DNA of 64,000 nucleotides from Haliotis cracherodii (GCF_022045235.1 NW_027266341.1:56234001-56298000), one strand, 5' to 3'; counted from the first letter of the stretch, positions 1,831 through 59,429 are shown. The notes: a model not told the origin generated them from the letters alone. Numbers and translations: made by a program.

Positions 1831-4829
1831 ATGAAGGTAAATATGTTTGAATTATTTGAATCCATTCCCTATTTAGAAAATATTATATCGTATTAGCGAA
1901 ATAATTGTTGAAAACGAAAACAAGATTAATTGATCAATTTCATAACTTGTCCTTTGATGTGATAGACGAGAGTGGAAATAACCTGACGGTACCACCCTAG
2001 GACGCTGTTTCATAACTTGCTTCCGATGTACCATTGCGTTTAATTTTATTTTATTTTAAATATTTATTACAACCAGAAATAAATTGTACACTTCAAATTT
2101 CTAAACACTTGAAAGGATTTTACTGTTTTGTTTACTATCTTATAATTATTAATCATCCAGGACTGCCTATATGTTTATAAGCATGTCAGTACTTTGAATG
2201 AAAAGGTCATTGATACAAAAATTGTAAACATGTACGTATGACTATATGTGATATCCTACTGACAAGAAGTTAAAAAACACCCGATTCTTTCATGTTTTAC
2301 AGTAGAAATGTCATGGCATGACAAATTAACGAAAGTAATATATAATATGAAATTTCAGTACCTGCTATATGTTATTCGAAAAAAACCTAAATGTTACAAA
2401 ATGTGTATATTGTATTTCTTTAATTTCAGCTTCCCTACGTCTTCGTGGTAACGGCGCTGTGTGTCGCCGCGGCACCAGCAGAATATGGCACCAACATCAA
2501 CTCATACGGCTCCAGTGGTCGGGACCAAACCCAATCGGTGGTACAAGATAGCCAATTCGGCCAGGACCAGGGCAAGTCAACCAAATCGTTGAGAGACTTA
2601 GACAGTTTTAACGGAGCACAGAACAGACAAGCCCAGAATGGACGGAACTACAACGGACGAGCTAACCAATACGGACAAAAGAATGCCAAGGCTGCGGAAA
2701 GTGGTAACAAGGCATCTCAGAACTTCGCAAAGCAGGATGCAAAATATGACGAGGTTGCTCGCCAGATCGCCGACGCTGGCTACTCACAAGGCTACCAGTC
2801 CGCTGCCCAGGGGAAGTATGATAATCTGGATGACAACAGGGCTCGTGGGTACAATGGTGCAGCTGCAAACAAGAAGGCTTATAACAGAGGGAAGGTGTTC
2901 AATGACAACATCTCTTATGGATTTGATAAGAAGTTTGATCAAGATTTGACCGAGAGGGGAGGCTTTGAGGAGGAGAACGGCCACACCGCTCACAAGCTGG
3001 ATGAGTACAGGGATAAGCAAAAGGCTAGGAAGCTGCTCAGAGGGGATCATTCTGCTGCCAATGCCAGACAGGATGCTCAGCACGCTCTTAAAGAAAGCAA
3101 GTTCAGCCAGAACGCTGCTCAGAAGCAGGCTGCCAATGGTAAATACGGCAACAGCGACAAGAAACTCGACAAAGCTGGTGCTACCCAGGATGCTCAAGCT
3201 GTTCAGTATGATAGGAAGGATAGCAAGTTCCAAGCCGAGGATGCTGGTCGTCAACAGGCTGTCAAGAAGGCAAACGAATTCGCAAACAAGGACAACGCTT
3301 TCGGACGCCAGGCTGCTGCCAGTCATGCAGGAGCTCAAGGACATGCTGATAAGAAATACTATGGAGGTCATGGCAATGATGGAAACCACGGTGGCATTAC
3401 TGGAGGCACTGCTTACGGAAACAATGGTGTCCATGGCAGCTCATCTGGTACTGGTACCGGCACCCATGGCCAAGGAAGTTCAGGACTTGCTAATCACAAG
3501 TATGGAGAGGACACCAAACAGGTTGACCAAGGTAAAGAACGTCTTGCCCAGGCTGCTGGAGCCACAGATGCTGCTCTTAAAGAATACAAGCAGGCAAAGA
3601 ACACAGGACAATTCGCCCAGCTGAAGAGTCTTCATGATCAACGCAACGGTAAATTTGCTCAGGGAGTCCACGATGCTCAAAATAATGGCTTCAATGCCAA
3701 GGATAGCCAGGCCGCTAAAACAGCCAGTGGGGGTGATAAGAAATATGCCGATGCTGCTGCCCAGTCCAACGCGAAGGCTGCCAAACACGATCTTGACGAA
3801 GCTGCTTTTGACAAGGAGAACTTCAAGAGGAACCAACAAGACAGGAACGAGAACTTCAAGAAGCTAAAGAGGTTCTACCATGACAAGAAATCTGGTGGCA
3901 ACAACATCGAGAGGCTCAACTACAACCGGAAGAGGGTCGAGAACGAGTTTGGAGAGACACAAGCTGCCCAAAAAGATCACCAGAACCAGTTTGACAAGGC
4001 TCACAAATCTGCAAAGCACAACCAAGCACAAAGGAAGAATAACTTCCAGGACGCCAAAAAGTCATCCAATGGCTTCAGCGTCAACAACGCCAAGAAGCTC
4101 TCTCATGGAAATGCTAACAACCAAGCTGCAGCCTTCAACAAAGCGGCACAGCAGGCTTATGGAAACAAGAAAGACGTTGCAGAGACTGACTTTTCCAACA
4201 ATAGAGATGCTTTAACTAAGCAGCAAAAGAATCTTCATGATAATGCTGTTGGTTCTTCTGCAGCAACATCCCAGGGATTCAAGAACGCTGCTGCTGCCGA
4301 GATTGTGAAACTTGGAAACGGCGGTGGCATCAGTGGTAACCTCATCAGCAACGGTGCCCACAGAACTCCAAGAAGAGGTTTCGAAGCTGTCAATAATGTA
4401 CATGGATCTGACATCCATGGCGCTAGCAGACCAGGTTCCGTCTACCAAGGTAACACGAACCACTTCGACAATGTTGGCGATAACAGCTTCGGCGGCTACA
4501 GAGGTGACCAACATAGAGGAAGGGCTCTAGGATCTGTTGGTTCTGTCAATTCTGGATACGGCAGCAACCGTGGGCATGGGGACAACTTTGGGTCGAGCTT
4601 TGGTGGGTTTAATGATGGATTCGGCAACTTTGGTTCCTTCGGTCAGAATAAGGGCAATTCCTTTAGTGGAACATATGCATCTAAATTAGGCGGAAGGTCT
4701 TCCGTGCCTCACAGAGGAGGTGACCTAAGCCTCTTTGGTTCCGGCTTTTCCTCTTTCGGTGGATCTAGCTCATTTGGTGCCAAACCTCAATTTGGGTTCA
4801 GACATAGCGCTAAAGGAAGTCTTTACTAG
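1831..4829 (+). CDS. Gene 1: secreted K/D/Q/N/A/G-rich structural protein, ~801 aa; join(1831..1836,2430..4829)
   Basis: ATGAAG|gtaaat donor at 1837. The tttcag| acceptor at 2429 is in frame with the 794-aa ORF and gives the signal-peptide-like N-terminus MKLPYVFVVTALCVAAAPA. AATAAA at 4920. Strong similarity to gene 2. Confidence 0.9.
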
Positions 4830-5204
4830 AACCAGTTGACCAATACCATCGCTGAAAACCACTTCTTTGGTTGGAGGAAGAATTAAAATGTAGTGTGAAG
4901 TTGGTATGTTATAACTTGAAATAAACATCGTATACAATCATTATTGTTTATTTTACTTTTTATTTAGACAATAACAATCAGTGATGGTAGATAAAAGCAA
5001 CAACTGATATTCATGCTATGGCAACAAAGGTGTAAGGATGTATTCAATGTGGATCCATGTAACGAACACATTCAGAAACGGTGTCCCTTTGTTAAGATAT
5101 TGTTGTTGTTGTTGTTTTTTAAATAGACCATGGTGTTCACTTTATGCTAAATATGATGCTGATTTAATACTCTATAGTTTCGCATTTTTCTCACTAATAC
5201 GGGT

Positions 5205-5420
5205 TGTATGTTTGTTAACGCCGCGCTCAGCAATATTCAAGCTACATGACGGCGGTACTGTAAATAATCGAGTCTGAACCAGACAATCCAGTCATTGACA
5301 TTATGATCATCGACCCTGACAAATGATATTCGATTACATGCAATCAACCAAATCACCGAGTCTGACCACCGGATCCATTAAGTCACCTCTTATGACATGC
5401 CTAGGTTACTGGTTACCTAT
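5205..5420 (-). mobile_element. Short interspersed repeat family D copy
   Basis: ttaacgccgcgctcagcaatatt...gacaatccagt...ctgaccaccggatcc, homologous to 17901-18260 and 47915-48177. Confidence 0.75.
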
Positions 5421-5446
5421 TTATTATCCAGGATCTCCACTGATGC

Positions 5447-57917: not shown

Positions 57918-57994
57918 GGGTCACGTGGTGCACGTATAACGGGATAATCGTGTGGGCAGCGACCATGTGACCATGCCAAAGGTACGTATATATG
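57918..57994 (+). promoter_or_regulatory. Gene 10 promoter: GTCACGTG, CATGTGACC and TATATA
   Basis: CACGTG at 57922-57927; CATGTG at 57964-57969; TATATA at 57987-57992. Confidence 0.7.
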
Positions 57995-58063
57995 GAGGCG
58001 ACATCAGAGTGGTGGTATCTGTCATCTCAACATTGGTGTATCTTCTAGTCAAGTCTGTTCATC

Positions 58064-59429
58064 ATGAAGGTAATATGAACGACATGCAATTGTTTTCATC
58101 ACAATTTGAAACTTTAAGCATTTGGGCGGAGTTTGGTTAATTCTGTAACTGACCGTTTTTAGTGTTGGGGAAAGTATGAGATTGATGCATTGTACCGTCA
58201 CACATGTACCAACTTTTAGTTCTGCGCTGAAATCTCGTTAAGTCGATCTTTATTTACTTTATTTCTCCTTCCAATGTCATATCAAACATTGGCATTCTTG
58301 TTTTTAGTTGTCCCAAGAACGACTTGTCATATAAGACTTCGGATAATGCAAATGCGATTGACGAAATTAAATACCTGAAAAGGCTGTACAATGTTGTGTT
58401 TTATCTTAATGTGAATTATGAACTGACATTAACTTGGAAAAGCTCATAGATATACCACTGAGAAAATAGTCATGAAGTTGGTGGCCGATACCTCTTTGAT
58501 TACATCGTGATACGAAATTAATAGAATTCTTATTTATACTTTGTATTTCATTGCACGATTTTCACAAAGACTTGGATTATTGTTAACCTAGGCGTTCTTA
58601 AATTGTTATGATTGGGAATTATTTATTAATATGCCCAGGTTCGATTTTTTAAAATCAAATACAACCACAAGAACTGCATTCAAGGCAAGTTTATTTTAAA
58701 TTATCTACCCATCAACCATGGTTTGTTTCGGACATCGGTGAAATATTATTTCATTTCAAACATCACGTGAACACTATTTTAAGAATATGCTGTATTTTCA
58801 TGACCGAGTTATTTCAGTTTCAACTGATTCTTTGTTTCTAGGTCGTCGTCGCTGTGTTGTCCGTGCTGGTCTGCTGTGCCCTTGCCCAGGTGTCCCACCT
58901 TGGCAAAGGAGCTGGTACTTTCGGTGTAGGTTTCAACAATGGACATATTGCTGGTACAGGCTATGGCTACAACCCATACAATAATTATGGCTATAACGGC
59001 TACGATTACGGTAAAGGCGTTGGCAATGTTGGCGTTGCTGGTACAGGCTATGGCTACAACCCATACAACAACAACTATGGTTACAACGGCTACGGCTCCG
59101 GTAAAGGCGTTGGTAACATTGGTGCTGGAAAAGCTTATGGAATCAACTATAGCCCCTACAACTACAACAACAATGGCTACGGTAAAGGCGTTGGCAAATT
59201 CGTTGTTGGACATGGAGCTGGTCTTGCAGGACACGGACCTTTCGTTGGACATGGATCCTTCGTTGCTGGACAGGGTTTGTACGGTCACCATGGCGCCATT
59301 GCTGGACATGGACCTATCGTTGGACACGGAGATGCCGGACACGGTGTTTATGGACATGGTGGACCCTTTGTTGGTCATGGAGTTGCTGGTTCAGTCGTCG
59401 GCAAAGCCAGTCCCTATTACTACCACTAG
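58064..59429 (+). CDS. Gene 10: paralogue of gene 9, ~197 aa; join(58064..58069,58842..59429)
   Basis: ATGAAG|gtaata. The ttctag| acceptor at 58841 is in frame and gives MKVVVAVLSVLVCCALA-QVSH; the protein ends KASPYYYH. AATAAA at 59506. Confidence 0.92.

Follow-up and report, generated by a model that had tools for sequence, protein, structure and literature searches.

Between positions 1,831 and 59,429 of a 64-kb stretch of the black abalone (Haliotis cracherodii) assembly – C78:56,234,001-56,298,000, hereafter the window – lie nine intact two-exon genes of one common design, whose products, to judge from their sequences, are probably secreted building blocks of a cross-linked (sclerotised) extracellular material, made by a tandem gene complex. 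The window covers the left part of this complex, which comprises at least 26 genes of the common design over ~210 kb. Genes 1 and 2 encode long proteins that, by profile similarity, belong to an unnamed protein family, known so far from gastropods only; the other seven (genes 3-7, 9 and 10) encode small proteins rich in glycine, with histidine, tyrosine and asparagine. As we know of almost no proteins, at the sequence level, that toughen gastropod radulae, jaws, opercula and periostraca without mineral, the locus offers a concrete set of at least 26 genes to name and test.

The common design consists of a TATA-like box, a 6-nucleotide (nt) coding exon 1, a phase-0 GT..AG intron and a single exon 2. 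The TATA-like box lies 59-141 nt 5' of the ATG in all nine genes; exon 1 reads ATGAAG in eight of them and ATGCAG in gene 5, with GT immediately 3'. The introns measure 369-1477 nt, and in every case a polypyrimidine-AG acceptor stands in frame with the downstream open reading frame (ORF), so that the intron, which follows codon 2, is of phase 0. Exon 2 has no internal stop and opens with a hydrophobic stretch of 14-17 residues, small residues being found at its end, in signal-peptide-like fashion (AHA/G, LAQ/V, APA/E, VLA/D, with the slash marking the end of the stretch); a poly(A) signal, AATAAA or ATTAAA, follows the stop codon by 24-122 nt in eight of the nine genes. The exon 2 products are of low complexity, secreted by design and, apart from the two Cys of gene 3, free of Cys in their mature part. 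A preliminary description of the window had proposed nine intact genes with TATA box, ATGAAG or ATGCAG, phase-0 GT intron and signal-like exon 2, and all were recovered where it had placed them:

Gene 1: 1701-4829, plus strand; long (2+799 codons); TATA 1701-1708; exon 1 1831-1836 (ATGAAG); intron 1837-2429; exon 2 2430-4829 including the stop codon.
Gene 2: 11638-15850, plus strand; long (2+862 codons); TATA ~11638; exon 1 11779-11784; intron 11785-13261; exon 2 13262-15850.
Gene 3: 21362-22237, minus strand; Gly/Asn/Tyr-rich (2+104 codons); TATA ~22237; exon 1 22149-22144; intron 22143-21677; exon 2 21676-21362.
Gene 4: 26723-27875, minus strand; 40% Gly and 8% His (2+199 codons); exon 1 27792-27787; intron 27786-27323; exon 2 27322-26723; divergent from gene 5.
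Gene 5: 30551-31717, plus strand; starts ATGCAG (2+234 codons); exon 1 30638-30643; intron 30644-31012; exon 2 31013-31717.
Gene 6: 37417-39423, minus strand; GHG/Tyr-rich (2+236 codons); exon 1 39309-39304; intron 39303-38128; exon 2 38127-37417.
Gene 7: 41892-43588, plus strand; inverted near-copy of gene 6 (2+236 codons); exon 1 41981-41986; intron 41987-42877; exon 2 42878-43588.
Gene 9: 50928-52224, plus strand; ends ..KASPYYYH (2+173 codons); exon 1 51028-51033; intron 51034-51702; exon 2 51703-52224.
Gene 10: 57921-59429, plus strand; ends ..KASPYYYH (2+195 codons); exon 1 58064-58069; intron 58070-58841; exon 2 58842-59429.

Low-complexity DNA yields long ORFs in several frames and on both strands – the window has antisense overlaps, and ORFs in a microsatellite at 40980-41721 – and the gene models might on that ground be taken for artefacts, that is, chance ORFs accompanied by fortuitous ATGAAG-GT words. 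This explanation is, however, effectively refuted by selection, identity with a RefSeq protein, orthologues and gene signals. The ratio of nonsynonymous to synonymous divergence (dN/dS) of paralogue pairs is 0.08 for genes 1/2, 0.26 for 4/5, 0.27 for 6/7 and 0.33 for 9/10, values that place the reading frames under purifying selection. Exon 2 of gene 2 is identical at 862 of 862 residues to an NCBI protein of H. cracherodii labelled 'sericin 1-like', which also bears out the earlier assignment of the locus to a gastropod; orthologues occur across gastropods; and TATA box, ATG, GT, AG and signal peptide are rightly placed in nine of nine genes, with the poly(A) signal less than 125 nt from the stop in eight.

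The word that marks exon 1 and its donor site is likewise over-represented. ATGMAGGT occurs 22 times in the window (5.3 expected) and the longer ATGMAGGTRWG five times (0.33 expected), and nine of the ATGMAGGT copies lie, correctly stranded, 369-1477 nt 5' of the nine large Gly/His-rich or Q/N/K/A-rich ORFs. This enrichment is local: ATGAAGGTAAGW has 12 copies, for 0.09 expected (130-fold), in a 244-kb region around the window, whereas genome-wide it shows no enrichment, with 433 matches against 396 for the reversed control. A search blind to exon 1, asking for an acceptor, a signal-like start and an ORF of at least 80 codons, returned a nearly identical gene set.

All homology searches used exon 2 sequences, and the matches retrieved show that the 6-nt first coding exon is treated unevenly by annotation rather than missed altogether, as had been supposed. 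The RefSeq 'sericin 1-like' protein consists of MK plus gene 2 exon 2 – the two-codon exon is thus already modelled – and the relatives of the small genes in H. rufescens and H. asinina all start with MK and a signal peptide. On the other side, gene 2 is the only one of three genes queried to have an identical database protein, and genes 1 and 6 have none. In the NCBI model of the H. asinina gene 1 orthologue (953 residues), MK and the signal peptide are replaced by an N-terminal extension of 150 residues, probably an upstream exon mis-joined in annotation.

The long proteins, encoded by genes 1 and 2, share 57% identity. A ten-member profile, searched against 1.84 billion representatives, retrieved 32 proteins, 17 of them at an expect value (E) of 1e-30 or below, and full-length matches within the family reach E values from 0 to 1e-181, which places genes 1 and 2 in it by profile similarity. 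Its named members are all gastropods – Lottia gigantea (with two adjacent genes), Gigantopelta, Pomacea, Littorina, Batillaria, Nucella, Babylonia, Plakobranchus and Haliotis – and no named bivalve, cephalopod or chiton is among the matches, the unnamed ones (from Logan, ENA and a Tara metatranscriptome) being of any possible origin. Many members start with M[KR] and a signal peptide and have an aromatic residue at the C-terminus. Two strongly conserved blocks, with a Gly-rich linker between them, recur in genes 1 and 2 and in many of their relatives: ..Y-G-F-D-K-K-F..E-x-G-G-F-E-E.. on one side and ..K-R-F-Y-H-D-K-K-S-G-G-N-N..L-x-Y-N-R-K.. on the other. In order, each protein comprises the signal peptide, an A/Q/N/K/D-rich arm of ~290 residues, a ~50-residue linker of Gly, His, Ser, Thr and Asn (36% Gly, 10% His), a second arm of ~270 residues and a Gly/Ser/Phe-rich tail of 170-230 residues; the hydrophobic content of the helical arms is low. 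In two independent AlphaFold runs, based on 10 and on 36 sequences, the same picture emerges: four helices, each 50-120 residues long, a short hairpin at each conserved block and a disordered linker and tail.

Pfam returned nothing for the nine window proteins and seven further proteins of the cluster and its paralogues, save a sub-threshold match to PF23818 at chance level; sequence searches of the PDB gave no relative of the long family or any other match, the ESM Atlas gave no usable match for gene 1, and the accession numbers and homologue identifiers of the long family occur in no paper of the searchable literature. This family of ~800-residue proteins, known so far from gastropods only, is thus without a Pfam model, a solved relative or a paper.

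Among the small proteins, those of genes 4/5, 6/7 and 9/10 are mutually homologous (E of 1e-6 to 1e-30, corrected for composition), and six of the seven small genes form one GHG/Tyr-rich superfamily, whose relatives were found by homology search only in Haliotis: an H. rufescens protein labelled 'shematrin-like protein 2' and four H. asinina proteins. Gene 3 has no significant similarity to the other small genes. Of the at least four subfamilies previously distinguished, the separation of the three pairs is thereby lost and that of gene 3 kept. Genes 6 and 7 are 90% identical over 1050 nt, exon and flanks included, with a synonymous divergence (dS) of 0.063. The small proteins contain 25-40% Gly, 5-9% His, 2-12% Tyr and 3-12% Asn, but only 0-2 acidic residues and 4-8 Lys plus Arg; in genes 4-10, 70-95% of the His residues stand within G-H-G. 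Cys is absent from the mature part of genes 4-10 and occurs twice in gene 3. The mature proteins have 157-220 residues in genes 4-10 and 88 in gene 3, and more than 400 in the largest Gly/His gene downstream. Tyr residues are clustered, as in GYGYNPYNNYGY and in the C-termini ..PYYYH or ..GHGVY: the last residue is Y in genes 4, 6 and 7 and E in gene 5, and the ending is ..YH or ..YYYH in genes 3, 9 and 10. Language-model look-alikes of gene 10 in the ESM Atlas are low-complexity cuticle proteins of arthropods (score 0.85-0.87), a weak lead.

The cluster, which the preliminary description had put at ten loci, does not end at the window. Gene 10, searched against the whole assembly, gave 32 matches, all at C78 56.27-56.39 Mb, and when the flanks of the window, 40 kb on the left and 140 kb on the right, were scanned with the same gene finder, genes of the same design were found to continue downstream (offsets are relative to the window):

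+67 to +135 kb: 13 further genes ending ..PYYYH/N/Q (the subfamily of gene 10), same exon design.
+143 to +157 kb: three Gly/His genes of 332-435 residues, same exon design.
+165 kb (C78:56,399,618-56,400,577), plus strand: 320-residue Tyr/Lys/Pro/Asn tandem-repeat protein, same two-exon design.
+174 kb: 819-residue Ser/Asn-rich protein, exon 1 less certain (ATGAGG or ATGAAA).
+185 kb: 198-residue protein, same design.

The repeat protein at +165 kb, with 17% Tyr, 14% Asn and 10% Lys in tandem units of the ..YDYKPQGYNNDHKPNSYNN.. type, recalls through its Tyr-Lys-Pro repeats the 3,4-dihydroxyphenylalanine (DOPA) proteins of the mussel foot protein-1 type. On the left, ~21 kb from the window, a 687-residue ORF (C78:56,212,779-56,214,839; 28% Gly, 21% Asn, 10% Ser) has a signal-like start and a possible exon 1 (ATGAAA/GT), with no TATA box found; it possibly belongs to the complex, as its leftmost gene. 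Its identification with Has-CL10Contig2 was rejected, the GGSGGSGFG repeat being absent.

Six gene pairs of the complex stand head to head, with start codons 2.3-3.6 kb apart, and three of them lie within a thrice-repeated unit of ~10.7 kb. Their start positions are as follows:

Window 27792/30638 (genes 4/5) and 39309/41981 (genes 6/7).
+68.7/+72.3, +79.4/+83.0, +90.2/+93.2 and +152.6/+154.9 kb relative to the window.

When the assembly was queried with gene 1, it returned gene 2 and six distant paralogues at C78:54.88-54.94 Mb, 1.3 Mb away. These are 30-34% identical, have 708-801 residues with ~20% Ala, 13-17% Asn and 9-10% Tyr, and carry GHGV-type tails (..GHGVVGLGHGVGGYGNG..) ending ..YPYYG or ..YQYY. 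All six have a ..ttttcag/TGT acceptor, and in five of the six the fetched flank holds a candidate ATG[A/C]AGGTAAGA 540-1010 nt upstream; since they share the exon design, the two-codon exon appears to be an old feature of the gene lineage. In H. asinina, the long gene and the four small-gene relatives lie on one 102-Mb contig.

The promoters of part of the complex share a further module. An E-box, TCACGTGA(CC) or CACGTGACC, lies ~22-30 nt 5' of the TATA box in genes 6, 7 and 9 and, among the eleven genes g11-g21 downstream of the window, in ten. In gene 6, for example, an E-box TCACGTGACC lies ~114 nt and the TATA box 84 nt 5' of the ATG, and in gene 9 CACGTGACC lies ~100 nt and the TATA box 77 nt 5' of it. 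Gene 10 has CATGTGA at the place of the proximal box, and g20 has no proximal box; gene 10 and all of g11-g21 have a distal TCACGTGA box ~130-143 nt 5' of the ATG. The E-boxes, found at window positions 39395-39425, 41890-41915, 50925-50950 and 57920-57965 and in 11 downstream promoters, have a core of the MiT/TFE or USF type. Most of their conservation is attributable to recent duplication.

In the material that we consider probable, the long proteins of genes 1 and 2 would serve as the scaffold, each with two helix-prone polar arms that bear a conserved hairpin-like block, a Gly/His linker between them and a disordered Gly/Ser/Phe tail whose last residue is aromatic. As matrix or filler of this material, the small GHG/Tyr proteins would be locked by tyrosine oxidation (to DOPA or dityrosine) and by histidine-metal or histidine-quinone links. 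The combination of G-H-G triads and Tyr clusters would make them a candidate design for metal- or quinone-cross-linked materials.

A number of results weigh against this reading. The confidence of the AlphaFold models is low, with a predicted local distance difference test (pLDDT) of 37 and 49 and a predicted template modelling (pTM) score of ~0.2, and the one helical stretch with a hydrophobic periodicity of 3.5 residues is the first of arm 1, while the three that remain have their peaks elsewhere. A coiled coil was rejected for genes 1 and 2 for want of a consistent heptad signal; the rod or fibre ascribed to them earlier has the long helices of these low-confidence models in its favour, and the 'rod' shape accordingly remains inferential. 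Arm 1 as a duplicate of arm 2 was also rejected, the two having no detectable similarity, and so was the idea that the small proteins are excised tails of the long paralogues, which are alike by eye but not significantly so after correction for composition. With 5-9% His, the small proteins fall short of the ~20% or more by which jaw and beak proteins, at ~20-30%, would be recognised. The E-box/TATA module, in the comparison of promoters, is absent from genes 1-5, so that nothing in the sequence speaks for a joint regulation of long and small genes. Finally, a search of 28 supplementary files on the H. laevigata shell proteome (6.2 million characters) found none of the motifs GPFVGHG, SPYYYH, GYGYNPYN, NINSYG and FYHDKKSGG, and the Lottia identifiers 238000 and 238001 do not occur in the Lottia shell-proteome files, some of which are incomplete and in which strings reading '238000' are intensity values. 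These absences argue against a role in the bleached shell matrix and do not separate radula from periostracum. The motifs and homologue identifiers are also absent from the supplements of a Lymnaea mantle atlas and of a survey of silk-like proteins, and the peptide motifs of the small and long proteins from every paper of the searchable literature.

Some of the same evidence bears on a possible explanation by common descent only, according to which tandem copying spread the exon design while the long and the small families serve in different tissues or materials and form no single complex. Consistent with it, the E-box/TATA module is found in genes 6, 7, 9, 10 and g11-g21 (one box in g20, two in each of the others) and not in genes 1-5; the long family is ancient and all its named members are gastropods, while searches with the small genes gave Haliotis proteins alone; the second cluster, that of the six long paralogues, has no match to a small-gene query in a genome-wide search; and no significant sequence link joins the small proteins to the long tails. 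Yet the long and small genes of the complex have an identical and unusual exon design, with an exon-1 word 130-fold enriched here and not genome-wide, H. asinina also keeps a long gene and four small genes together on one chromosome, and clusters of this kind are, by analogy with established examples, usually co-expressed. We hold common descent only to be the less probable of the two readings.

It is unlikely that the products are not structural at all. The form of that idea which we weighed, secreted antimicrobial polypeptides like the Gly-rich or Gly/His-rich peptides of arthropods and plants, is very improbable for the small proteins, even though they are cationic, acid-free, Gly/His-rich and secreted and their genes diverge rapidly and are tandemly amplified. 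A mature size of 157-220 residues in genes 4-10 is large for such peptides (88 in gene 3); dibasic processing sites and an amphipathic design are lacking, and there are only 4-8 Lys plus Arg; Tyr clusters and a conserved Tyr motif at the C-terminus are what cross-linked materials typically show; and the genes are linked to others for 800-residue scaffold-like proteins and a DOPA-protein-like repeat protein.

If the products do build a cross-linked material, its tissue can be named only tentatively, and we put the chitinous feeding cuticle (radula or jaw) first. The long family is present in Plakobranchus, a sacoglossan without an adult shell; the gene 10 look-alikes, being arthropod cuticle proteins, are a weak lead in the same direction; and the radula of H. 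tuberculata, the largest measured, is poorly mineralised, its stiffness being ascribed to tanning (PMC9079087). Radula papers on Tylomelania, Patella and Cryptochiton (RTMP1) yielded no match and loose analogies only. The mantle edge, as the source of periostracum or shell framework, is a possible alternative. Most known low-complexity secreted proteins of molluscs are mantle products, which counts for it, and the DOPA-protein-like neighbour gene would suit a periostracum. Also in its favour, shematrins and Has-tsfgr1 are Gly-rich, Tyr-ending products of the mantle edge (PMC2034539). The operculum or larval structures, the gut cuticle and a pedal adhesive are, taken together, rather unlikely. 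A long family known only from gastropods would fit the operculum, a gastropod novelty; adult abalone and limpets have none. That the whole ~210-kb complex is the toolkit of one non-mineralised hard tissue – most attractively the radula or jaw cuticle, with a helical scaffold, a GHG/Tyr matrix and a DOPA-type repeat protein – is a doubtful proposition, though one of consequence: if true, the protein matrix of an unmineralised radula or jaw would for the first time have its molecular components listed, and a new family would be named.

In the remainder of the window, where no other host gene had been seen before, ten other gene-like ORFs have no meaningful Pfam match (nine are blank, and one has a sub-threshold match to PF25541, at 17.6 bits for a cut-off of 27.8), and an Rfam search of the window gave no match. 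The other features are these:

18884-19011: N gap in the spacer that separates genes 2 and 3, outside every gene model.
44620-44747: N gap in the spacer from gene 7 to the locus-8 relic, outside every gene model.
46070-46438, minus strand: locus 8, a possible decayed relic, without signal peptide and without exon 1.

Locus 8 had been counted as the tenth member of the cluster, a count of which nine genes stand; the tenth is a weak relic, whose BLASTP match to gene 10 has an E of 0.24 and whose sole DNA match, to the 3' flank of gene 7, extends over 102 nt at 72.5%, and the complex itself has at least 26 genes. Adjoining it, at ~46760-46890 on the minus strand, is a short interspersed element (SINE)-like repeat derived from a transfer RNA, with an internal ..GGTTCGATTCCC.. 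box; related copies lie near 38610-39233, 45312-45476, 9788-9943 and 61739-61910, scattered over the introns and intergenic DNA of the cluster. A compound CA/GT-rich microsatellite (40980-41721), which lies between the divergent genes 6 and 7, gives rise to spurious long ORFs of His/Pro/Thr repeats on both strands.

The closest comparison for the long proteins is with their true homologues in other gastropods (E down to 1e-181): LOTGIDRAFT_238000 and LOTGIDRAFT_238001 of Lottia, LOC112560630 of Pomacea, the Gigantopelta proteins labelled 'filaggrin-2-like' and 'keratin type I cytoskeletal 9-like' and the Littorina protein labelled 'EbhB-like'. None has a described function; they have in common with genes 1 and 2 the length class, the start with M[KR] and a signal peptide, the aromatic C-terminus and the blocks Y-x-F-x-K-K-F..E-x-G-G and K-x-F-Y-H-x-K..G-G-x-N..L-x-Y-x-R. 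More distant likenesses are to whelk egg-capsule proteins and aculeate silks, which are long, secreted, helical fibrous proteins, rich in Ala and polar residues and with Gly-rich termini. The products of genes 1 and 2 are similarly long, secreted, mostly helical by prediction, Ala/polar-rich and Gly-rich at the termini, but differ in having no consistent heptad, no PDB sequence match and low model confidence; abalone, moreover, lays no egg capsules.

For the small proteins, one comparison is with Nvjp-1 of Nereis, the jaw protein of Glycera and the HBPs of squid beak – secreted, Gly/His-rich and acid-poor proteins of non-mineralised hard tissues, in which His binds metals or quinones. The small proteins are likewise secreted, Gly- and His-rich and poor in acidic residues, but Tyr and Asn are prominent in them and there is no sequence relationship. 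A second comparison is with the shematrins of pearl oysters and Has-tsfgr1 of H. asinina (PMC2034539), which have a signal peptide, Gly-rich repeats with hydrophobic spacers and a C-terminal motif ending in Tyr and form small multigene families. The small proteins may be likened to them in these respects, a final Tyr being confined to genes 4, 6 and 7. This resemblance is one of composition only, 'shematrin-like protein 2' being an automatic NCBI label: the homology search with the small genes retrieved Haliotis proteins and no bivalve protein, and regular GHG triads, NPYNNYGY blocks and a ..PYYYH end set the small proteins apart from the shematrins described.

As to the arrangement of the genes, the clusters for silkmoth chorion and insect cuticle are made of tandem small genes for secreted low-complexity proteins, with one intron inside the signal peptide and divergent pairs. 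The proteins of the abalone complex have no homology to chorion or cuticle proteins and no chitin-binding R&R domain (Pfam being blank), and its divergent pairs, 2-4 kb apart, are unlike the shared chorion promoter of ~300 bp. In architecture, the analogy drawn in the preliminary description fits: the complex has tandem and divergent small genes, with starts 2.3-3.6 kb apart in the divergent pairs, and a single intron just after the start codon, within the region that encodes the signal peptide.

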